The position numbers were made by a program, and so were the translations under genes. 64,000 bases of DNA. It comes from Mantamonas sphyraenae STR306. Taxonomy: Eukaryota; Protista; CRuMs. The notes below the pieces were generated by a model. The model did no database searches and was not told the DNA's origin. It was given only the letters and a program-made list of their open reading frames with translations. The stretch covers positions 36,708 through 100,707 of the forward strand of contig JAPMXV010000014.1 of NCBI GenBank assembly GCA_026936335.1, given 5' to 3'. How positions within the stretch are numbered: position 1 is the stretch's first letter; each line of letters starts with the position of its first letter. Of this stretch, positions 43,857 to 63,614 are shown piece by piece.

Positions 43857-45615
43857 ATGTCGCGCTCGTCGCTGTTTTCCAAAGCCACCAAGTGTGCCCC
43901 GCGCCACACCATGTTTGCCAACCAGGGCCTGTATGGCCTGGGGGCTCTCGAGGTGCAGACGCAGGAGGAGGTGCTTGCCGTGCACCAGCACCAGGTCCGC
44001 AACCTCGATGTCCATGAGTACCACTCCAAGCAGTTGCTCCGCAAGTATGGCGTCTCCTGCCAGCACGCAAAGGTCGGCTCCACCCCGGACGAGATCCTCG
44101 CCGGCGCCCGTGAGCTCGACGTGCCCGAATACGTCGTCAAGGCCCAAATCCTTGCTGGCGGCCGTGGCAAGGGCACCTTTTCCAACGGCTTCCAGGGCGG
44201 CGTCCACCTCTGCAACACGTAAGCTTGGGCCCTTTCGCTTCTTCCATGTTTGCCTCCCAGCTGGCGAGTGTGTGTTTTGCGCCTGCCGTCCCTCGGTTCT
44301 CTTCTCGCCTTGCTCACATTTCCAGCCTTCGCCCCCTTTTCTTCGCCTTCGAACAACAGCCCCGAAGAGGCCAGTGAGCTGGCTGCCAAGATGCTGGGCC
44401 AAACCCTGGTCACCAAGCAGACGGGCGAAGAGGGTACCCTTGTGCAAAAGGTTGGTTTGGGCCCTACTCGGCACGTATCCAGCGCCAAACGCAGCCCACG
44501 GGAGGGAAAACCCCATCTCGCTGACTCGTCTTTTCGCCACCCGGCCCCAACGGCGACCCCCACACACTCTGGCCTCACCGCACACTGCCACAGGTCATGG
44601 TCTCCGACTCGGTCAACATTGAGAAGGAGTACTACTTTGCTCTGCTGATGGACCGCACCCACCAGGGCCCCGTCATGGTCGCCAGCCCGGCCGGCGGCAT
44701 GGACATTGAAGCCGTCGCCGAAGAGACCCCGGAGAAGATCTTTACGGTACGTGAGGCACAGTGAGAGGACGAAACAAGGGAAAGAGAACGGGAACGGGGA
44801 CGGCGATGGGTGTAGGAGGAGGGGGGAGTGTGGGGGGGGTGGCCTGGCACAATGCTCACCCGAGACTCGGGGTACGTTTTCAACCACAGGATCCGATCGA
44901 CATCTTTGACGGGATGACGCAGGAGCAGGCCGACAGCATGGCAGCCAAGCTGGGCTTCCAGGGAGACCAGGCAGCACGTGCAGCTGAACAGATGCTGCGC
45001 CTGTACGACCTGTTTATTGGCACGGACGCCACGCAGGTGGAGATCAACCCGCTGGCTGAGCTGGACAACGGCGAGGTGATGTGCTGCGACGCCAAGATCA
45101 ACTTTGACGACAACGCAGCATTCCGTCAGGAGGAGATCTTTGCCATGCGCGACTTTAACGAGGAGGACCCGCGCGAGGTGGAGGCAGCCAAGAACGACCT
45201 GAACTATGTGGGTCTGGACGGCAACATCGGCTGCATGGTCAACGGCGCAGGCCTGGCCATGGCCACCATGGACATCATTCAGATGTACGGTGGCATGCCT
45301 GCCAACTTCCTGGACGTGGGAGGAGGAGCCACGGAGGGCCAGGTCACCGAGGCCTTTAAGATCCTCACCAACGACAAGCAGGTGCAGGGCATCCTCGTCA
45401 ACATCTTTGGCGGCATTGTCAAGTGCGACGTCATTGCCGAGGGCATCGTGGCCGCCGCCAAGACCGTGAACCTCAGCGTGCCCCTCACCGTGCGTCTGGA
45501 GGGCACCAACGTGGAGAAGGGCAAGGCCATCCTTGAGAGCTCGGGACTGCCCATCATCACTGCCGACAACCTCGACGAGGCTGCACGCAAGAGCGTGGAG
45601 AGCATTGGCCTGTGA
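43857..45615 (+). CDS. Mitochondrial succinyl-CoA ligase beta subunit (SUCLA2/SUCLG2 family), 4 exons
   Basis: Transit peptide, [65 protein letters not shown] and RLEGTN. Confidence 0.96.
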
Positions 45616-45664
45616 TGATGTGTTGTGGCGTTCAGCGCGCTGTGGTCAGCAACGCAAAACAAAA

Positions 45665-46684
45665 ATGACCTTCAAAACGAATGCAACGGGTGGGTCATAC
45701 ATCCACGGCAAAGCCTTTTCGGCGGACAAACGAGAATGCATTCTCTTTCACTACCAATCCAGCTTGCGTCCTTCGTGCAGAGGCACAGCGGAGGCTCTCG
45801 GTGTGTCTCCTTCCGTCGTGTCCAAGATTGTACGTCAACACCGAGCCATGGGCCATGTACGCCCTCTTGTGGCCCAACCACCGTCCAGGCGTCTCCTGGA
45901 TGCCAATGACGACCAGTTCATTGCTGAACAGGTGGCCGATGATCCGCGACTGTACCTGGACGAGTTGCAAGTAGCCGTTGCTCTTCATCGCAACAAGGTG
46001 GTATCTCTGTCCACAATTCGCCGTTCTTGTGCGCGCATGGGACTGACTCGCAAGAAGGTGAGTGCTATCGCCAAGCAACGGTTCAGGGAATCCACCGTGG
46101 CGCGCACACGCGAGTTTACTCGAGCAATGAGGATTCGCGGTGTGTTCCGAGCGCCGAACGTGGTCTTCTTGGACGAAACTGCAGTGAACAACAGAGTGTG
46201 CTACAGGAGATATGGTCGTGCGAAACGTGGGCAACCAGCGGTCGTTGTGGAGAACCATCCCAAGCAAAAGCGCATCAGCGTGCTGGCGGCCATCAGCACC
46301 GGTGGGCGCTCGCCACTGGTAGCGTACACAATGCGAGAGGGGTCATACAACCGGCAGCTGTTTATGGAGTTCCTGGAGCAAGACCTCTTGCCCCGCATGC
46401 GAGATTGCCGCCAAACAGTTCTGGTCATGGACAACTGCTCCATCCACAAAGGCGATGCTGTACGCCAGCTGTGCACCTGGTATGGGGTGGATGTCGAGTT
46501 TCTCCCGCCTTACACACCTACGCTCAACCCCATCGAGCTCATGTTTAGCAAGTTCAAGGCGGTCCTCCGCAGGGAATTTCATCGAGTGGACATTTGCACA
46601 TTCGCGGCGATTTGTACTGCATTGGGGCATGTTACGGCTGCTGATGTGAGGAACTGGGTCCATCACTGCGGGTACCGCATGTAG
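45665..46684 (+). CDS. IS630/Tc1-mariner DD34E transposase, 339 aa, intact, with paired-like HTH
   Basis: VVFLDET, LVMDNCSIHK and FLPPYTPTLNPIELMFSKFK, with 34 residues between the second D and E. N-terminal HTH plus the LYLDELQ..VSLSTIRR..GLTRKK winged-HTH-like segment. Confidence 0.93.
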   Translation: MTFKTNATGGSYIHGKAFSADKRECILFHYQSSLRPSCRGTAEALGVSPSVVSKIVRQHRAMGHVRPLVAQPPSRRLLDANDDQFIAEQVADDPRLYLDELQVAVALHRNKVVSLSTIRRSCARMGLTRKKVSAIAKQRFRESTVARTREFTRAMRIRGVFRAPNVVFLDETAVNNRVCYRRYGRAKRGQPAVVVENHPKQKRISVLAAISTGGRSPLVAYTMREGSYNRQLFMEFLEQDLLPRMRDCRQTVLVMDNCSIHKGDAVRQLCTWYGVDVEFLPPYTPTLNPIELMFSKFKAVLRREFHRVDICTFAAICTALGHVTAADVRNWVHHCGYRM

Positions 46685-48001
46685 GATCGTGGAGCGTAGC
46701 CATTCAGGGCGCACGCTGGTGCTGAAAAACCCGTACTCCCAATGCCATCTTTGTGTCGGGGGGGCTCAAAGAGAAGCAGGGAGGGCTAAGTGGGGCACCT
46801 ACAAGGCGTGGATAGTGCCCACCTCCCCTGGCAGCAGTCACCCGAGTCAGGAGCGACGGCCTTGCAACCGGGCTTTGCGAACATACCATGCGCCCCGTGC
46901 ATAAACAATCCATGGAACGCCTGCATACAGTCATCATGCCACATGGTCCTCTGGTTTTGGCTCCAACACCCGTGGGAGGAGCAGCATGCAGGTTGACGCC
47001 GTTGAGATGCACCCCTTGACACCCAGTACAATTATTGTGCACATGCGTCTCCCCTCAGCAGACCCATGTCCCAATATGTATCTACAAACACCATGAGACA
47101 GCCTGTGAAGCCCGATACCGTGGATTCACAACCTGATTTTCACGTAGCCTGACAAGGCGGTTCTTTGTGTCGTCGAGGACGGCCAAGGCCCCACGGCAAG
47201 GGGCGCTTCCTGCTGTAGTGTCTTGGTGTAGTCGCACAGCCTTTCCACTTGACTCTGTTTGGTTCCTGTGGACGTGTGCCACTTGCTGGTCACGCGACGG
47301 CAACGAAGCATCACCCTTTTGCCCGTGCGGTGCCCAGCGCTGCGTCTGCCGGTTTGGTGGGCAATCGGGCGTCGTACAGGGAGCATACTGCAAACGGGGA
47401 CAGCACATCACACCCACATTTGCATGTAGAGGCGACGACGCAGCGCGACGACGCGGCAACTTCTAGCCACTCATCAATTTTTCTTGGCGTTGTGGCCATG
47501 CCTCCTACCTTTCAACCCCTCCTCGGTGATCTATCTCCTGCTGGATTGAGTTTGCCAGGTACAAAACAGCCGAGACTCTATTGTGACGTGCAACGCCTGC
47601 GAAAGCAGCACCTATCCTTCCTCGCCCTCCTGGTCGTCCAGGTCCAGGCTCTGTTCCCTCTGTTCCTCAACATCGTTACATGGGCCACTGTGCTCCTCAG
47701 TGAGTGTGAACTGCAGGATTTCAACCCTCTGTGCCGGCAAACGGCCAACGTGCGTTTCGATGTTCTCGTCGGCAACGGCGTGCGCGGGGCCCTTCCAGAG
47801 CAGCAAGTGATGTGGGTAGGGCTGTGGAGGATGGGGCTTGTGAACTGTGTGCAAGTGCTCGGGGGCGTCGGAGAGGGCAACAAGCTTTCTGCGGCATTTG
47901 ACAGCGAGGCGCGAGGCTTGACGTTTGACAACTGACCTGCTCTGAAAAAGCGGCGGCTGGCCCAAGTGCGCGGGTGGAGTCAATAGTTTCAAGAGTGTAG
48001 A

Positions 48002-51000
48002 ATGTCGATTCTGAAGTGTCAGCACCATAGCTGCAACAACGAGACAGTGCTCATGGTGTGCTGGGTAACGTCAGCCCGATCTCACGTGTCGCTGGTGTGT
48101 CCGACCTGTGTGGCCGACAACGAGTCGATTTCCCTGTACACACCACGAACAAGACTACCTGCAAATCTGGGCGAGCCCGAAGGTGACATGCAAGGGTACG
48201 CCAACGTCAACGGTGTCAACCCCGCGAAGGTGGCATGCTGGGTGTCGTCCTATGCCACAGCCGTGCGCGCCTCTCCAACTCTGCGAACGTCCATGTGCAA
48301 GTACCTTCTCGGATGGCTGGAGGCAACGACAGGCGGGAACGACCCGACCCAGTTGGGGCCTGAGCCTGGGGAGCAAGGTAAGCTCAAACCGCACTCAATC
48401 CCGCTGACAGGAGAGTGGAGATTGCTCACCCGCCCTCTTTGCGCCGGCACACACAGACCCCAGCGTCGTCAACACGGCCCTTCTGCGGCAGACCTGGTGC
48501 ATGGCCATGTTCTGTGACGACGACATGTATGCCGTGGCCTGCAACGATCTCTTCCTTGCCGCTACAGTGCTGGCAGGCGGCGACGACCTGTGGGGTGACT
48601 CGGCAGATTTCCATCACCGCCTCGAGGTCGCATTCGACTCTGACTTCCCCATCCAGATGTTGCATGGTGGTACCCCCCCGCCAGCGGACGCCGCAGGGGT
48701 TGCAATGCTTGCGGGGCGAGGTGCTCTCCAGCAACGTGAGGGCGAGGGCCTGCCGGAGCAAGAGCAGGAAGTGCCCTTCGGGGTGCTCTGTTTCCAAGGG
48801 GAGCACTACACGGCATGGCTTCCACTGGCGGAAGGGAAATTCCGTGTGTACAATGACCTTGTGCCGCAGCTGACTGACGAGGAGTGGCCCGCGCCTGAGC
48901 GTGCGCCCACGGGTTTCAGGCTGGTCTTCCTCAAGTCTCAACCGGAAGAGGAGTGGCGGTTGCCGTCTGCCATGGGCACCGTGGCTCTCGACAACAAATC
49001 AAACGTGTTCCGCAAGCCCATGGCCATCAGGGGCCCGCGAGTTGTGATGCAGAGCAAGGAGAGCTCCACCTCAGCTGCTGGAAGGCGTTTGTACGCGCAC
49101 GCTGCACGGGCTCGAGGGACAACGCCAGCGCCTCAAGGACGGCCACCTTCGACCCGGGTGCAGGTTGCTGGGTCAACCGCATCTGTGCGTGGGCTCCGTT
49201 TCAACCGTGTGCCCGCCACGCAGACATCGGCAGCAGGGCAGCTGAAACAGCTTCCGACTTCAGCCGGCGACAAGACGCCAGTGACCGCAAAGTGTCTGGA
49301 CGTGTTGAACGACAACTGGCAACCCCCACCTTTGGCTGACTCTGCTGTCAACGAGGGCGTGGAGGGTGGTGTGCAGCGTGGCGTCGCTGGGTCGGGGGGA
49401 ACCCGCCTTGCCGCAGTGTACGTTGGCCTCAGCAGCCTCGCCGCTCGCTACTTGCACCTCTCCGACCATACCATCACGCATCCCGCCACGTTCACCTCTG
49501 CCTGGCAATGGGTCACCACGATCCTCGACACTGTGTTGCCCAGATTGAGCAAGCTGTTCTCGACTCGCACGGTTGTGGTTGTGGACGACGTCGTGTCCAC
49601 AGCCGCACTGTTTGCAGGTCGAGCCACGCCAGCCGAGCTGCAACGCTTCTACCAGCAACTGAGTGCAGCTGCGTCCCAGGACACCTTCTCCAACGCCAAG
49701 CAGCGAGCGTTCGCCGCTCGTGCCACTGTCACCACCCTGGCGCCAGTGATGCGCGACTACCTTGCTGCCCATCAAGTGGCAACGATGTCACTGGACGAGT
49801 TCGTCACAAACCAGGCCGTCAGAAATAAGGCCGTCAGAAACCAGGCCGCCAAAAACCAGGTCAAGGCCGAGGACGATATCGTTCTGTGCCACCGCGAGGG
49901 GCGTCTCATGGCTGGCCTCGCACTCCATGGGTCAGCTCCGGGGCTGCGGGTTGTCAACATCTTCAACGCCCATGTGGTGGACACGAAGAAAGTGCACGCC
50001 CAAGCGACGTCATGGAAACTGATAACCTGGGCCAAGGGAGTCAAGAAGAAGCCCAAAAAGGGGAAGACGACAAAGACCAAATCGCGAGGGAAAACATCGA
50101 TCAAGAGTGACGACGAAAAGAAGGAAGAAGAGACTAAAGCGCTGAGGCAGCAGCTGCTCACGGTGGGTCTGGAGGAGACCGAACGTGACCATGGTCCCAT
50201 GTCGGCCGTCGCCCTGGCGCAAGCAGTCTGCCAGCGGCTTGGAGGAGTGCATGGTCTCGATCATCAACGCGCGCAGACCGTGATGGAGTCGTTCAGCAGA
50301 CTGTGTACGCAGGCCAAGCCGAAACCGCGCTCAGTGGAGGAGTTGGCACAGGCCATGGGCTTGACCGAGGTCAACATCACCTACAACCACAAGCCAGAGC
50401 TGAAGAACACCGATGACACCCGTATGCATATGGAGTACAAGCTCGGGCGTGGCCACAGTGCACGGGAAGGGACGCTGCACGTGCAGGAGATGCCATTCCA
50501 TCTCGCACAGGGCATTCACAAGGATGTTGCGAAGGCCATGGTGGGCCAGGAGGACGCCACGGAGCCGGACGAGGAGGACTGTGCGGTGCCCTACCTGCTG
50601 ACGGCAACTGAAGCCGAAATCGAGCAGCTTGTGGAGGAGATTCCTGCTGGCTTTGATGCATCTGTCTTCAAAAAGAACAAGGAGGAGTCACTCGGTTCCC
50701 GTGAGGCCGTTAAAAGGTGGACATCTGTTCCACATGTGATCACAGCACGGCACGAGAAACAACTGGCAGTGCTCCTGCGGAAGGATGGCCAAGTGCTTCG
50801 CCCTCCTGCGACCCCATCATCAGCGACCCGTGCGGACCTATTCGAGGTGGCGCTCCAGACAGGGGCAACAACAGAGGGCGAGACATTGACGCCGCTCAAG
50901 GATGCTTTTTATGACAAGGATGACGTGAAGGGAAGCCAGCGGGGGCGACCCGTGTGGATCCCGCACGGTTTTGATTTCGCCACGCTGCTGCCTTCGGCCA

Positions 51001-54000
51001 CGGCGATCAGGGAGCACGATTTTGTTGAGTACCAGAGCGATCTCAAGAAGAATCTGAAGCTGGAGGCGAACGTGCGTGGGCTTGGAAAGAGCGAGGCTGA
51101 CGTTCTTGGAGCGTTGGCGGACTGTATGCTCGTGCAAACAGCCTTGCTTCGAGCATGGTTCGTCGACCAGGTGATTCCAGAGGTGAAAAAGGACCCAACT
51201 GCATGGTTCACTGCGCCCCATGGACGCCAGCAATCGGTGGATGGCAGCGACGAGCAGGAGGAGGGGGAGCTGGATGAGGCGGAGCTGGATGAGTCGGAGC
51301 TGGATGAGGCGGAGCTGGATGAGGCGGAGCTGGATGAGGCGGAGCTGCCAACAGAGGATCAGACGATGATTGACGGGATGGTGGTCGACGGGATGGTGGA
51401 AGTTCACAGCCGCGTGAAGCCCTTCTACCTGCTCGAAGCGTCCACGGCTCTGCGCACAGTGGCGACGCACAACCTCAAGGTACTCAAGGAGAACGTGGAC
51501 ACCCCAGAGGAGCTCAAGTCTGTACGATTTACCAGGAACGGGATACAGAAGGCGGGCGATGGTCAACATGGTTTCGACTTTTCCTTCATGGTCACGCGTC
51601 TGAAGGTGGATCTTTCGGAGGCGCCCGTGTCGAGCATGGCCAATGACATCGCTCGTGCCTTCAATGGCAGCCTGCAGTCGGCCATCTCCTTGTGTGCCTA
51701 CCCGATGATCGTGGCGCTGATGAGGAACGGGGCGCCCAGCGAGCTGCCCATGTCCGCCATCGTGGCCAGCGTCGCCGCGCTCATGCGTACAAGCTATGCA
51801 AAGACCAAGAAGGCGTTCCAAACCCACCAGGTGTCGACAAAGGACACACGTGACTTTGTGTTCTCTCAGCCCATCCACAAGGCCACAAAGGCTGCTGCCG
51901 CGGCTGCTGCTCACTCTTCAGTGGAGGTCCAGGGGCCCTCCATGGATGTGCAGGAGTCCTCCATGGATGTGCTGCCCTCTGTGGATGTGGAGTCATCCAT
52001 GGATGTGCAGGGGTCCTCCGTGGATGTGCTGCCCTTTGTGGATGTGGAGTCATCCATGGATGTGCAGTCCTCCGTGGATGTGCTGCCCTCTGTGGATGTG
52101 GAGTCATCCATGGATGTGCAGGAGTCCTCCGTGGATGTGCTGCCCTCTGTGGATGTGGAGTCATCCATGGATGTGCAGGAGTCCTCCGTGGATGTGCTGC
52201 CCTCTGTGGATGTGGAGTCATCCATGGATGTGCAGGAGTCCTCCGTGGATGTGCTGCCCTCTGTGGATGTGGAGTCATCCATGGATGTGCGGTCCTCCGT
52301 GGATGTGCTGCCCTTTGTGGATGTGGAGTCATCCATGGATGTGCAGGAGTCCTCCGTGGATGTGCTGCCCTCTGTGGATGTGGAGTCATCCATGGATGTG
52401 CAGGAGTCCTCCGTGGATGTGCTGCCCTCTGTGGATGTGGAGTCATCCATGGATGTGCAGGAGTCCTCCGTGGATGCGCAGCTCTCTGTGGATGCGCAGC
52501 GCTCACAAGGTGTACCTCCATGGGACCCGTACGAGGAGGTGTGCGCAAGTCTCTCGGATCAACTCGGCAAGCACGTGCGTGGCAAACGGGACGCGTTGTC
52601 TGTGCTGTTGGATGTGATGCTCAAGCCCGACCTGAAGACCAATCTCAAAAGCACACAAGCAAAGCGCGCCATTGCATCGACAGCAGCATCATTGGACTGT
52701 GTTGACGCGATGTTTCCCGGTCCGGTTGACATTGGCGGCCAGTTCGTCTTCGGCGCGTACTCCGTCAAGACGTACGCGTTTAAGATCTTTGTGAACACCA
52801 TGGAAGCAAGGTGGAAAGCCCATGGAAAGCCGAACGGGAATGCCAACCCAGATGACCCCCAAGACGCCAACCCGGACGCCAACCCGGACGCCAACCCGGA
52901 CGCCAACCCGGACGCCAACCCGGACGCCAACCCGGACGCCAACCCGGACGCCAACCCAAACGACCCCCCAGACGCAAACCCGAACGCCAAGTCGGACGCC
53001 AATCCGGGTTGGTGGAATGCACTGAAAGAACGCGAGTGGGTTTTGACGGATGAGGCCATCCCGAGTCTCCCTAAATGGCTCAAGCAGGCAGTGTATCGGT
53101 GTCGGTATGCTCGTCGCATGCCAGAAAACAACAGTGACGAGGATCTGCCCAACAAGCACTGGGCAGGGAAACGGCCGCTGCGAACAGTTCCCGTGAAGTC
53201 AATACTCATGCTCACGCGCGGCGTTGGCACGAAAAACGCAAGGTGCCTGCTGAAGAACGTCAGCGCCAGCAGCATGCGCATGCTCTCTGGTGGAATCGCC
53301 GCTCAGGGGAAGTACAGACGAGCGTTTGTGTTACAGCCACCAAGAGTTCACACTCTCCTGCCTTCACCGGCGAGCCTCGCAACATTGATCAGGCCAAGGA
53401 TGGCTCATCTCCTGCCCCTTCTGCTGGACCCCAAGAAGAACGCGCTGATTGCCCTGGCCGTGCTGAAGCCCACGGGCATGCCAGACACGTTGACGACCGA
53501 GATCCAGAAGATTGCTCCCGGTTTCCCGAAGTACCCCGTTCCGAAGCGTGGCTTGGTCGAGCAGGTCAAGGCCTTTGCCAAGAATGGATACGCAGTCCTT
53601 GAGCATGCACGCAAGGTGCTGTGGATCAGCATTGACCCTGGTCGTGGACGCGACTGGGTCGAGGCGATCTTTGTGCGGGACGGCCAGCTGTATGTGGCCA
53701 CCTTGCCCCTGGACAGCCACGATGTGCAGGCACACAAGGCAGGGCAGGACCGAGTGCTGGCGTCGTACACGGACTTCAAGGAGGAGTACAAGCAACGTGT
53801 CTTCGGAAAAGATTTGCACAAGGATGCGAAGCACATGCGTGCGCAGTACGCAACGTTTCGCAAACGAAGGATGGCAGGCGTGCGTGAGATGATCTCCGTG
53901 ATCCACAAGTTCCGCGCGCATCTGGGCCTGGAGCAGGTGATTGTGCTGCAGCCGACAAAGACGTTTGGCGGACGCGGGAAATCGCAGGAGATGCGGGAGA

Positions 54001-54503
54001 TGCTGGCCAACCACTTTGTCGTCATTGCAGCAGACGAGAGGTATACATCGCAGCAGTGCTTCTGTGGCAGCGCTGTCGACAACTTGGACGACTTTGGCGC
54101 TGAGAAGTTTGGGCGATGGCGGACGTGCAGCAGCCACTGCCTGTCGGACATCGACTCCAACATGTTTGACGCCACCAAGCAGCTCAAACGCTTTGCACAA
54201 CGGCACGCATGCAAAGAGATGGAGGGCGAGGGTGAGCACAACTTGCACCAGGCAGTTCAGAGAGACCGAGGCTCTGCACACTGCATCTTCTGGCGGCAGA
54301 TGCTCTTCTTTGTCACAGGCGTCTGGATGGAGAAGCCAACAAAGAAAATCAAGGTGCAACGCAAGGCAGCAGACAAGGCAGGCGAGAGAAGCAAGAAGAG
54401 AAGAGATGAGGAAGTGGGGGAAGAAGAGGATTCGGGTGGGTCACAACCACAACAGCATGCAACCAAGCGACAAAGGGTACCAAGCGACGAAGGAGGCAAA
54501 TGA
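48002..54503 (+). CDS. Giant Fanzor (TnpB-like RuvC nuclease) fusion protein, ~2140 aa; exons 48002-48377 and 48457-54503
   Basis: RuvC-I WISIDPG (D at 53634), shifted RuvC-II ADERYTSQQCFC (E at 54036), Cys cluster CFC...CSSHC and RuvC-III QRDRGSAHCI (D at 54264). A 79-nt GTAAG...CTCAC...CACAG intron joins the upstream ORF in frame. Confidence 0.85.
51267..51347 (+). repeat. 15-bp coding repeat x5 (ELDEA)
   Basis: GAGCTGGATGAGGCG tandem array. Confidence 0.95.
51938..52500 (+). repeat. 57-bp coding minisatellite, ~9-10 copies (SVDVLPSVDVESSMDVQES)
   Basis: Near-identical tandem units built from (A/G)TGGATGTG submotifs. Two units lack one codon, so the frame is preserved. Confidence 0.95.
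52863..52958 (+). repeat. 12-bp coding repeat x8 (DANP)
   Basis: GACGCCAACCCG tandem array. Confidence 0.95.
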
Positions 54504-54630
54504 TCGGCCTACAGATCCAAATCCACAGGCTTACCCATACTACCTTGTCGCACCATGTGGTGCATCGACTAGCCGAAGGCCATGTGCACAGCCATGTGGC
54601 CAATACAATGATGAACGAACGATCCCATTC
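54504..54630 (+). ncRNA. Candidate omega-RNA (Fanzor scaffold plus flank-derived guide)
   Basis: Lies between the Fanzor stop and the putative right end. Hairpins GTC-GCACC-ATGT-GGTGC-ATC-GAC (54547-54569) and GGCCATGTG-CACAGC-CATGTGGCC (54578-54601). Inferred by analogy to TnpB/Fanzor loci. Confidence 0.45.
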
Positions 54631-54712
54631 CCATTCCTTCTCATCGCAAACAATCCATGCATTGCACTCGTGCGCCCTCCGCAACACCCAAACCCAAACC
54701 ACACACACAAGC

Positions 54713-57030
54713 ATGACTGAGCTTGACGACACTTCTGACCTTGTCGATTACGAGGAGGACGATCTGGAGACCACTGAGGAGGCTACCACCACAAAGTATG
54801 TTTCAACCAGCACGTGAGCCAGCCTCGCGGCCGGCTCTGGCTCTCTTCTCTTCTTCTTCTTCTTCTTCCGGCTTGCTTGGGATCCAACCACCGCGCCCAC
54901 TGTTTTTCTCTCAGGGGGGAGCACATTCGCAAGCGAACACATACGCGGGGGCTCACTGTTGTGGAGTTGCTTGGCGTGTAGCGCTGGTTTTTTGTGTCTC
55001 CCGCCAATTTGGCGCCAGCCACATTTTCTTCCCTCTCGCGGGGGTTGAAGCCACGCCTCGCACTCCACGCGCTGCCCCCGCTCGCGCGCACATCGTCTCC
55101 ATCTGGGATGCCTGCGCATGCAAGGCGCACCCCACCCACCTGCCTCCTGTGCTGCATACCGGCTGCGATTCGCACACCAAAGTGCGCCAGACGTCGCCGG
55201 AGAAAAAAATGCAACGCAGGAGTGACGGCCGAGGTGGAATGTGCGCCTTTTCGCCTCGTCTGCTCGCATCCCAGTGGACACCAGTACCAGGCCACCGCAA
55301 GGCGGCCCAGCGATCAAAATTCAGAGGAGCCAAGGAATTCACGATGCGTCCCTCCCCTTTGTCCACGCGCGTGGTGTGCGCAAGAAAAAGAGGCGCCAGA
55401 TGCTGGGATTTCCATGTCTGGCTCGATGCGCCCAAAACGCAGAAACACGCTCGTGGCGGAGGAGGGACGAGGTTCAGGCCACGCGTATCCTAGTATCCGA
55501 TGACAAACGCATGTGCGGCCCCGGCTGCAAGGAACAGATTGGACGGTTATGTCGCGAAAAGAGGCAAAACCAATCCTGGGCGAGAGGCCATCTCTCTCTG
55601 CCCGCTGCCCGGTGTCGCACTCGCACACTTGCACACTTGCACACTTGCACGCACGCACACACATACACACACACACACACACTCCATGCCACGATTTTTG
55701 CCCAGTTGTCGTCTCTCTCGTACAAAAAACCACTTGTCTCTCACACTCAAGCTCGCGGCCTCGCAACAACAACAACAACAACAACAACAACAACCTTGGA
55801 TATTTATCCAACCATCCAAACTGTTACAGGGTGGCCACCGACAGCTCCACGTACTCGAGCTCCTTCAAGGACTTTCTGCTGAAGCCCGAGCTGCTGCGCT
55901 CGGTGGTGGACCAGGGCTTTGAGCACCCGTCCAAGGTGCAGCACGAGGCCATCCCGCAGGCCATCCTGGGTGGTGACATCCTGTGCCAGGCCAAGTCGGG
56001 CATGGGCAAGACGGCCGTGTTTGTGCTGACCACGCTGCACCAGCTGGAAACGGACGACAACAACGTGCAGGTCGTCGTCATGGCCCACACGCGCGAGCTG
56101 GCCTTCCAGATCGCTCACGAGTACGAGCGCTTCACCAAGTACATGCCCGAGGCCAAGGTGGCTGTGTTCTACGGCGGCATCCCGGTCAAGCAGCACAAGG
56201 ACATCCTCAAGGACGACCCGCCCCACATCCTGGTCGGCACCCCGGGCCGCATCAAGGGCCTGCTCAAGGACGGCAGCCTCGACCTGAAGAACGTCAAGCA
56301 CTTTGTGCTGGATGAGTGCGATTCCCTGCTGGACTCTCTGGACATGCGCGCCGACGTCCAGTACATCTACCAGCAGACGCCGCCCATGAAGCAGACCATG
56401 ATGTTCACCGCCACCCTGCCCCAGGAGGTCAAGAGCATCTGCCGCCTCTTCCTCAACAACCCCATGGAGATCCTCGTCGACGACGACAGCAAGCTCACCC
56501 TGCACGGTCTCCAGCAGTACTACATCAAGCTCACCGAGGAGGAAAAGACCCAGAAGCTCACCGATCTGCTCGACGCCCTCGAGTTCAACCAGGTGGTCAT
56601 CTTTGTGCGCAGCGTCAACCGCGCCAAGGCCCTCAACAGCCTGCTGCGCGAGTGCAACTTCCCGTCCATCTGCATCCACTCGGGTCTCAAGCAGCCCGAG
56701 CGCATTTCCCGCTACAACCAGTTCAAGAACTTTGATGCCCGCATCATGGTTGCCACGGACATCTTTGGCCGCGGTATCGACATTGAGCGCGTCAACATCG
56801 TCATCAACTACGACATGCCCGTCGCCGAGGAGAGCAAGGAGGGCCGTGGCGCCGATGCCTACCTGCACCGCGTCGGCCGTGCTGGCCGCTTCGGCACCAA
56901 GGGTCTTGCCCTCTCCATGGTGTCCTCTGCCGAGGACTCGGAGGTCCTCAACGCCGTCCAGGAGCGCTTCGAGATCAACATCGAGAGCATCCCGGATACC
57001 ATCGACGTGTCCACCTACATGAACGCCTAA
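54713..57030 (+). CDS. DDX39: DECD-box RNA helicase UAP56/SUB2 (exons 54713-54795 and 55830-57030)
   Basis: [46 protein letters not shown] and [12 protein letters not shown]. Confidence 0.97.
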
Positions 57031-62462: not shown

Positions 62463-62525
62463 TGTCACCGTCGAAATGAAACATGGTTGATGCTGTGTGG
62501 GATGTCAGTGGATGGGGAGAGTTGG

Positions 62526-62681
62526 AACGCAGAATTCACATCAACACAAACCGAGGGACGTGATTGCTGAAGTTGATCTTCTTTTCAGCTTCGTCAGCCC
62601 AGATCTTGCCCACAGCCATGCCAACAGAACCAATCGGGTGTTTATCTTCTTTTCTTGTGTTTGGGGGTTGTTTTCCTCTTT
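62526..62681. repeat. ~155-bp direct repeat, copy 1
   Basis: AACGCAGAATTCACATCAACACAAACCG...CAGCTTCGTCAGCCCAGATCTTGCCCACAGCCATGCCAACAGAACCAA...TTTTCCTCTTT is repeated with a few differences at 63460-63614. Confidence 0.92.
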
Positions 62682-62726
62682 CCTGTGTGGGATGGGATGC
62701 CCAGCGGCAGCCAAACAAACAAAAAA

Positions 62727-63248
62727 ATGTCCAACACACCAGCACGTAAGGAGCTCAACCGTGGTTCGCAGCACTTCTTGGCAAAGGAGTACGAGGAAGC
62801 CGTGGAGTGTTATGACAGGGTGCTGGAGATGGATGCCACAAACAGGACTGCAGCCTACACCAAAGGGTTTGCGCTCCACAATCTGGGCAGGTACGAAGAG
62901 GCGCTTGAGAGCTTGGACAGGGCGCTGGAAATTGATCCTGATTTCGCGGTGGCGTGGAAACGAAAAGGAAACACACTGGCCGAGATGGGCAAGTACGAAG
63001 AGGCGATCGAGTGCTTCGACAGGGTGCTGGAAGTTGACCCAGAATTTCTGAAGGGTTATAGCGACCAAGGGGACGCCCTGTGTTCTCTCTACTGCGACAA
63101 AGGGCGCGCCCTGTGTGCTCTCGACAACTACGAAGACGCCCTTGCATGCTTCGACCGTGGCCTGGAGGTGGATGCAGACAACATCGAAGCAAAGGAAGAG
63201 AGGTCAAAGTGCGCGCAGCTTATGAAAGACGCAACAGCATCGCAGTAA
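62727..63248 (+). CDS. Small intronless TPR-repeat protein
   Basis: Canonical TPRs: YEEAVECYDRVLEMD, YEEALESLDRALEIDP, YEEAIECFDRVLEVDP and YEDALACFDRGLEVD. Confidence 0.85.
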   Translation: MSNTPARKELNRGSQHFLAKEYEEAVECYDRVLEMDATNRTAAYTKGFALHNLGRYEEALESLDRALEIDPDFAVAWKRKGNTLAEMGKYEEAIECFDRVLEVDPEFLKGYSDQGDALCSLYCDKGRALCALDNYEDALACFDRGLEVDADNIEAKEERSKCAQLMKDATASQ

Positions 63249-63459
63249 GCAAGAGCATGTTGGCGAGTGGAAGTGTGAATGCCGTTGTGGAGAAGAAGGG
63301 ATGGACTGCACAAGGCGACTACGGGACTAGCCTGCTCTCGAAAAAAACACAAACGCGTCGGCAAACGCGTCGGCCAATGCGCTCAAAAGCCTTGCTGGCG
63401 TCGTGTCGACACTGGAGAACTGAGAAAAGGCAAGCCGTGGGTGGCAGAGATGGAATGGA

Positions 63460-63614
63460 AACGCAGAATTCACATCAACACAAACCGGGGGACGTGTTTG
63501 CTTGAAGTTGATCTTCTTCATCAGCTTCGTCAGCCCAGATCTTGCCCACAGCCATGCCAACAGAACCAAACGGGTGTTTATCTTCTTTTTGTGTTTGTGG
63601 TTGTTTTCCTCTTT
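63460..63614. repeat. ~155-bp direct repeat, copy 2
   Basis: Close match to 62526-62681. Confidence 0.92.

Follow-up and report, generated by a model that had tools for sequence, protein, structure and literature searches.

A Fanzor1-like gene with a candidate reduced USP-fold protease domain at its N-terminus in Mantamonas sphyraenae

The locus and the neighbouring transposase

The window analysed, meaning the whole stretch of 64,000 nucleotides, is gene-dense, intron-poor host DNA of about 59% GC, with housekeeping genes for MCM, Sec10, filamin, SKIP and a DEAD-box helicase. A transposase gene and a long, single-copy Fanzor-type gene lie between two host genes. The following features were located, all protein positions being given in spliced numbering.

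Stop codon at 45615, left flank: succinyl-CoA ligase beta-like gene, named from its translation
45665-46684, plus strand: IS630/Tc1-mariner transposase gene, 339 aa (NCBIfam transpos_IS630, Pfam DDE_3, DD34E spacing)
48002-48377, plus strand: exon 1 of the Fanzor-type gene, 125 codons plus 1 nt (376 nt, phase 1), from ATG 48002 (codon model)
48017-48109, plus strand: putative C4 zinc finger, Cys6/Cys11/Cys33/Cys36 (sequence)
48194-48268, plus strand: putative USP Cys box, Gly65-x-x-Asn68, a 6-residue insertion, Cys79 (codon 48236) and helix (chained profile)
48378-48456, plus strand: predicted phase-1 GT-AG intron, 79 nt (donor and acceptor signals, frame kept, coding signal)
48457-54503, plus strand: exon 2, a single open frame to the stop (ORF)
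48768-48938, plus strand: USP-like His box with pre-His strand, His242 (48804), Asn258/Asp259 (48852/48855) and box-6-like strand (profile, hhalign, tblastn)
51252-53007, plus strand: three tandem repeat arrays, all in frame, within the long middle region (15 nt x6.4, 57 nt x9.9, 12 nt x12.1)
53619-54266, plus strand: Fanzor/TnpB-type RuvC and zinc finger (published motif)
54504-54712, plus strand: 209-nt spacer up to the adjoining host gene, where a guide RNA would be expected
ATG at 54713, right flank of the Fanzor-type gene: DDX39/UAP56-like helicase gene

The transposase scored 128.5 bits against NCBIfam transpos_IS630, above the cut-off, and matched Pfam DDE_3 with an E-value of 5e-27. 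Its DD34E residues are intact (D170, D256, E291). It is positioned upstream of the Fanzor-type gene across a spacer of 1.3 kb, the neighbourhood expected for a mariner-Fanzor pair, and from this adjacency we infer that the two are linked. Its two closest relatives are fungal (30-36% identity), and by inspection no Fanzor motifs were observed in the genes downstream of either.

The ATG of the transposase is located just 50 nt past the host stop codon (45615-45665), with no TA or inverted repeat in between. Terminal inverted repeats with a TA target duplication were also sought, and neither a convincing repeat pair nor element ends were found. The transposase may have been domesticated, or the left end may have been lost. 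For the 209-nt downstream spacer a folding z-score of -1.8 was obtained; the Rfam search returned no match, and no guide RNA was found. Elsewhere in the window, at 62519-63605, two direct repeats of 50 and 85 nt, about 90% identical and some 935 nt apart, flank TPR-like repeats and represent a local duplication.

Gene structure and the Fanzor-type C-terminus

The spliced model encodes about 2,140 aa. Its donor at 48378 (AAG/GTAAGC) is the sole plus-strand GTAAG within 45600-54720, and the donor hexamer is identical to that of a host intron at 44219. The acceptor, CACAG ending at 48456, is in frame, is preceded by a branch-point-like CTCAC and a pyrimidine tract, and resembles a host acceptor at 44593. 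Another AG that keeps the frame, at 48419-20, would shorten the intron to 43 nt.

A codon-position Markov model, trained away from the Fanzor-type gene region, was applied to each segment. Exon 1 scored -2.4 bits in its own frame versus -44 to -97 in the other five, the intron scored -9 to -23 across all frames, and for 48457-48517 the exon-2 frame yielded -1.3 versus -14.9 for the exon-1 frame. The coding signal therefore switches frame at the splice sites. With a lone strong donor, an in-frame acceptor and this switch, the splice predicted in the earlier note is borne out at the level of signals, and removal of the intron 48378-48456 from the mRNA is considered highly probable.

Translation without splicing can hardly be entertained: exon 1 would be a separate 171-aa ORF, the long ORF would start at ATG 48501, and the Cys and His boxes would belong to different proteins unless an exon-2 Cys (102, 97 or 88 residues before the His) were the nucleophile, and although both ORFs exist mechanically and the intron is shorter than three measured host introns (141-143 nt), this is opposed by the unique strong donor, the host-like acceptor, the kept frame, and the loss of coding character of the exon-1 frame at the donor and its gain by the exon-2 frame at the acceptor, before ATG 48501.

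The exon-2 frame is blocked on its upstream side by a TGA at 48405, and only splicing can therefore place Cys79 in one protein with the His box. The earlier note had described the whole fusion as visible only after splicing; this holds for the Cys half, whereas the His box already lies with the RuvC motifs in one uninterrupted frame of 2,031 codons (48408-54500).

Just upstream of exon 1, the stretch 47499-48000 looks coding. Its plus-strand frame, with a stop at 47933, is that of exon 1, and the two could be joined in frame by removal of a weak GT-AG intron of 78 nt (47923-48000). The mirror minus-strand frame 47615-47990, which is acidic, scores nearly as well. No Pfam match was found for the stretch, which represents an additional 5' exon or else a small gene in divergent orientation.

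The C-terminal region was compared with the Fanzor/TnpB signature of Bao and Jurka (PMC3627910), D-X(125-275)-[TS][TS]-XX-C4 zinc finger-X(5-50)-RD. All elements are present, at Asp 53634, Glu 54036, TS 54045, Cys 54057-54140 and RD 54261-54266, with spacings of 136 and 40, and none of 3000 shuffles reproduced the motif. By motif position the D-E-D residues are Asp 53634, Glu 54036 and Asp 54264, the Glu being rearranged to before the zinc finger as in the catalytic layout of Fanzor (PMC11423790). The nuclease C-terminus claimed earlier thus stands, and a Fanzor-type assignment of this region is very likely from its sequence.

Profile evidence for the RuvC region was limited to a match to Pfam Cas12f1-like_TNB below the cut-off (E 0.012). 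With the selection motif masked, no score was obtained on a Fanzor2-rich, mostly viral profile. A motif scan revealed a D-E-x-x-T-S-Q-x-C-x-C-G core common to this region and metagenomic Fanzor1-like ORFs, which had been picked on the C-x-C knuckle motif itself. As the loci were picked on a motif, and the RuvC region gave no score once it was masked, the Fanzor assignment rests on the motif constellation and the adjacent transposase.

No relatives of the RuvC region were found by phmmer in 1.84 billion representatives. The long ORF, searched by region, had no homologues in any protein library; exact sequence look-ups gave no match, and the viral, genome, phage and plasmid scans contained no homologues. 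In the middle region, where the guide-binding WED/REC lobes were looked for, no family match was obtained with Pfam and other libraries. A single-sequence structure model reached a pLDDT of just 35, and fold searches with such low-confidence models were uninformative. The motif style is, by eye, like that of PPa-2/PPa-3 and of the metagenomic L133-type ORFs, with too little alignable sequence for a tree.

The L133-type ORFs (L133:7029-9602, minus strand; also L134, L137, L140-L142 and L144) form a multi-copy Fanzor1-like family on metagenome contigs, reaching about 860 aa at 70% GC, with sub-threshold matches to Pfam TNB; some copies are intact and others frameshifted. The closest match to the zinc-finger motif of the window was a 69-codon Fanzor-like fragment, L131:5664-5870, situated between metabolic genes on a 49% GC metagenome contig.

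The Fanzor ORF contains four in-frame tandem arrays between 49802 and 53007, with units of 15, 15, 57 and 12 nt; their copies match at 84-95%, and the arrays are therefore recent expansions. A Lys-rich stretch at 50034-50130 is a possible nuclear localisation signal.

Fanzors usually have about 600 aa (PMC10530073), about a third of the length of the spliced protein. Giant Fanzor1 proteins are already known in slime moulds (PMC3627910), among them PPa-4, of about 1,800 aa by line count and with an unannotated N-terminus (PMC3627910 file 3), and large size by itself is not new among Fanzor1. The gene resembles the Fanzor1 genes of Tc1/mariner elements (PMC3627910, PMC10530073) in its C-terminal D-TS-C4-RD with rearranged Glu, its intron and its adjoining DD34E transposase. 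In contrast to them, no inverted repeats or TA target site were found here, and the protein of about 2,140 aa has no detectable homologue and carries an N-terminal protease-like domain of a kind on which the papers searched are silent.

The candidate protease domain

By coordinate arithmetic, Cys79, His242, Asn258 and Asp259 fall where the earlier note had placed them. The two exons were tested separately, with 91 viral USPs as reference set; these had been gathered by a Cys-box DNA pattern, and all are Pfam UCH.

Exon 2 gave the clearer result. On a chained four-segment profile its His box scored 17.9 bits, with all four segments in order and register; this was the best of 699 window tiles and was attained by 4 of 10,000 shuffles, while true USPs score 34 bits or more. 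By hhalign, the His strand, the N-D strand and the last strand were in register (P 0.0019, probability 14%). A His-box HMM ranked exon 2 first of 796 window tiles (1 of 2,000 shuffles) at just 5.4 bits, a nominal window-wide E-value of about 0.7. A tblastn search of 1.86 Mb of fetched loci gave His boxes of viral USPs as six of its eight top matches (E 0.3-1), from loci chosen on the Cys box only and not on the His box.

The USP His-box motif G-x-H-Y...[ND]-D is present with a weak absolute score, and its His-to-Asn spacing, 16, is the one seen most often among the 91 viral USPs. A single-sequence model of exon 2 placed strands on the His-box segments, with a pLDDT of 55-62 there and 43 overall. 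The fold search with this low-confidence model was blank; a USP2 chain, ranked 33rd (E 2.8), was not counted. A DNA scan for the His motif returned chance matches only.

The Cys box in exon 1 was marginal. On the chained profile, allowing the 6-residue insertion, P was about 0.046 (462 of 10,000 shuffles), and at least six unrelated window tiles scored higher; the best trace fell on Gly65/Cys79 unforced. Neither the HMM nor hhalign matched exon 1 to the viral USP profile. Between Asn68, the presumed oxyanion residue, and Cys79 there are 10 residues versus 4 in the Cys box of canonical USPs (G-L-x-N-x-G-N-T-C), and with the helix profile by itself Cys20 scored slightly above Cys79. Two alike C-W-V-[TS]-S motifs occur in this exon, at 48059-48073 (Cys20) and 48236-48250 (Cys79), either by chance or through internal duplication. 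A run of residues resembling the USP Q-D box straddles the splice junction.

Of the zinc finger described earlier at the N-terminus, the four Cys residues were found in place, whereas the Pfam matches were all sub-threshold (E 0.03-0.3). A ZnF-UBP identity was rejected, the region being too short.

For either exon, scanned separately, no match above threshold was obtained in Pfam, NCBIfam, PHROG or PDB, and Pfam UCH gave none at E-values up to 10. The boxes occur in USP order, and the Fisher-combined P of the exons was 2e-4 before correction for post-hoc choice. If about 10 positions in the protein or 100 in the window are allowed, we estimate a combined P of about 0.002-0.02, which is suggestive and not decisive.

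Cys79 and His242 lie 163 residues apart, about 35 of these being low-complexity, as against 195-402 in the 91 viral USPs, and no finger CxxC pairs occur between the two residues. With a span below the minimum of 195, there is no room for a C19 domain complete with fingers. The fingers are the defining insertion of USP, UCH_1 and C98 (PMC10318531); since they are absent, the domain is not fileable as C19 and is at best a reduced USP-fold domain. The likeness to USP/peptidase C19 (Pfam UCH PF00443) consists in the order Cys before His, the G-x-H-Y strand, the Asn/Asp 16-17 residues after the His and the box-6-like strand. It differs in the six extra Cys-loop residues, the short span, the missing fingers, the very short pre-His loop and a score below all Pfam thresholds.

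The C-W Cys motif and the strands near the His presumably also resemble those of USPL1, of peptidase family C98, for which Pfam gave no match on either exon. USPL1, a SUMO protease, is similar in its His-to-acid spacing of 16 (His456-Asp472), in its very short loop ahead of the His and in having no blocking loops; unlike the present domain, it has zinc-bound fingers and a Cys-His span of 220 (PMC8983731).

Other papain-like families were rejected. For Ulp1/clan CE, a His-Asp followed by Gln...Cys 35-60 residues later would be expected; the next Cys lies 163 residues after the His, and no Ulp1 motif is present. OTU proteases carry a His-x-Asp/Asn motif. The context of His242, G-E-H-Y-T, has neither this nor the Asp-x-His motif of VTD (PMC9741609).

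The earlier claim of a USP-like protease is thus retained for the His box, which shares the reading frame of RuvC, and weakened by the marginal Cys box, the short span and the lack of a library match. An origin of the N-terminus from the USP fold is judged probable. That the domain is an active enzyme appears possible, at a little short of even confidence.

An N-terminus of USP-fold descent that is inactive or decayed, acting as a scaffold or having no role, is an unlikely alternative. It would account for the degenerate Cys box, the missing fingers and the low-complexity insert, and it is in keeping with the repeat expansions elsewhere in the protein and the lack of element ends. Inactive transposon-derived DUB domains do exist (PMC9741609), but they are without catalytic residues, whereas the present protein has all three candidate residues, and its frame is unbroken for 2,031 codons.

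Somewhat less likely still is a chance look-alike, in which a giant Fanzor1 would merely carry a long, variable N-terminus of unrelated fold. The lack of library matches, the nominal HMM E-value near 0.7, motifs chosen after the fact and the precedent of PPa-4 with its unannotated N-terminus (PMC3627910) agree with it. It fits poorly with four His-box segments in order and register that give the best tile of the window, and with top tblastn matches to USP His boxes even though those loci had been chosen on the Cys box only.

Proposed function and relation to known systems

With slightly better than even confidence, the gene is interpreted as encoding a Fanzor1-like nuclease that has captured an isopeptidase domain of reduced USP fold. 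Spliced once, it would yield a protein of about 2,140 aa with the RuvC nuclease at its C-terminus. The N-terminal 290 residues would comprise a small zinc finger and the captured cysteine protease domain, cut down to thumb and palm without fingers, with a putative triad Cys79-His242-Asn258/Asp259. Carrying an element-encoded guide RNA, the nuclease would bind and cut its DNA target. As the likeliest mechanism, the tethered protease would remove ubiquitin or SUMO in cis or nearby. Acting on the fusion protein itself, it might spare it from degradation; acting on the transposase or on proteins at the cut site, it might favour element-copying repair. In this scheme we infer splicing of the mRNA, the fold, the triad, the activity, the substrate, the guide RNA and the partnership with the upstream transposase.

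Precedent exists for such an arrangement. A C19-transposase fusion is known in Trichomonas, and OTU and Ulp1 domains occur on Ginger, Mutator and Helitron proteins (PMC2836005). The VTD domains of Helitrons have DUB activity, for which a role in averting degradation is proposed (PMC9741609), and one Fanzor1 is degraded via Keap1, an E3 ligase route, in human cells (PMC11514467). The present protein would share with the transposon-borne deubiquitinases a papain-like isopeptidase on a protein of a eukaryotic DNA transposon. Theirs are fused to transposases or Rep-helicases, whereas here the partner is a nuclease of RNA-guided type.

A more ambitious version, which we regard as unlikely, is an active, natural RNA-guided deubiquitinase or deSUMOylase, in which the Fanzor lobe would bring a minimal fingerless USP to a guide-chosen site and edit the marks there. 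Such a gene would possibly be domesticated, its transposon ends having been lost.

Ubiquitin or SUMO removal fits precedent better than self-processing, in which the protease would act in cis, in the manner of viral papain-like proteases, and cut the polyprotein to release a smaller Fanzor. The earlier note had raised such processing as a way to release the nuclease, for which no positive evidence was obtained, and we consider it very unlikely. In its favour, ubiquitin may not be gripped by a fingerless domain, the protein is about three times as long as the usual Fanzor of about 600 aa (PMC10530073), and three L-x-G-G sites occur versus 0.55 expected. Two of the three nevertheless lie within the protease domain, and a cut at the third (53283), about 115 residues before RuvC-I, would presumably remove the expected guide-binding lobes. 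No L-x-G-G site is placed to free an intact Fanzor plausibly, and the transposon proteases so far tested are DUBs.

No fusion of a Fanzor to a protease or deubiquitinase was reported in the literature searched, of which coverage was incomplete, and to that extent the remark in the earlier note that no such fusion was recognised as described is upheld. Two short word searches revealed no USP motifs in the Bao and Jurka Fanzor sequences. Other USP-plus-RuvC architectures, which the earlier note had proposed to seek, did not turn up: none of 80 loci carrying Fanzor/TnpB motifs, 16 metagenomic and 64 viral, contained a fusion. One giant-virus contig (L184) has a DNA motif of TnpB/Fanzor2 type and, about 6 kb away in an ORF of its own, an ordinary USP gene.

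Both parts are of known kinds, and their combination appears undescribed; it is represented by one orphan sequence, at motif level. Fanzors have so far been described as nuclease-only transposon passengers, and transposon proteases have been reported on transposases or helicases. If the reading is true, an isopeptidase-Fanzor fusion would tie RNA-guided cutting to ubiquitin or SUMO control, and a fingerless USP would be structurally unusual. Such a fusion would also make it possible to test directly the long-standing suggestion that deubiquitinases serve transposons in avoiding degradation or in steering repair.
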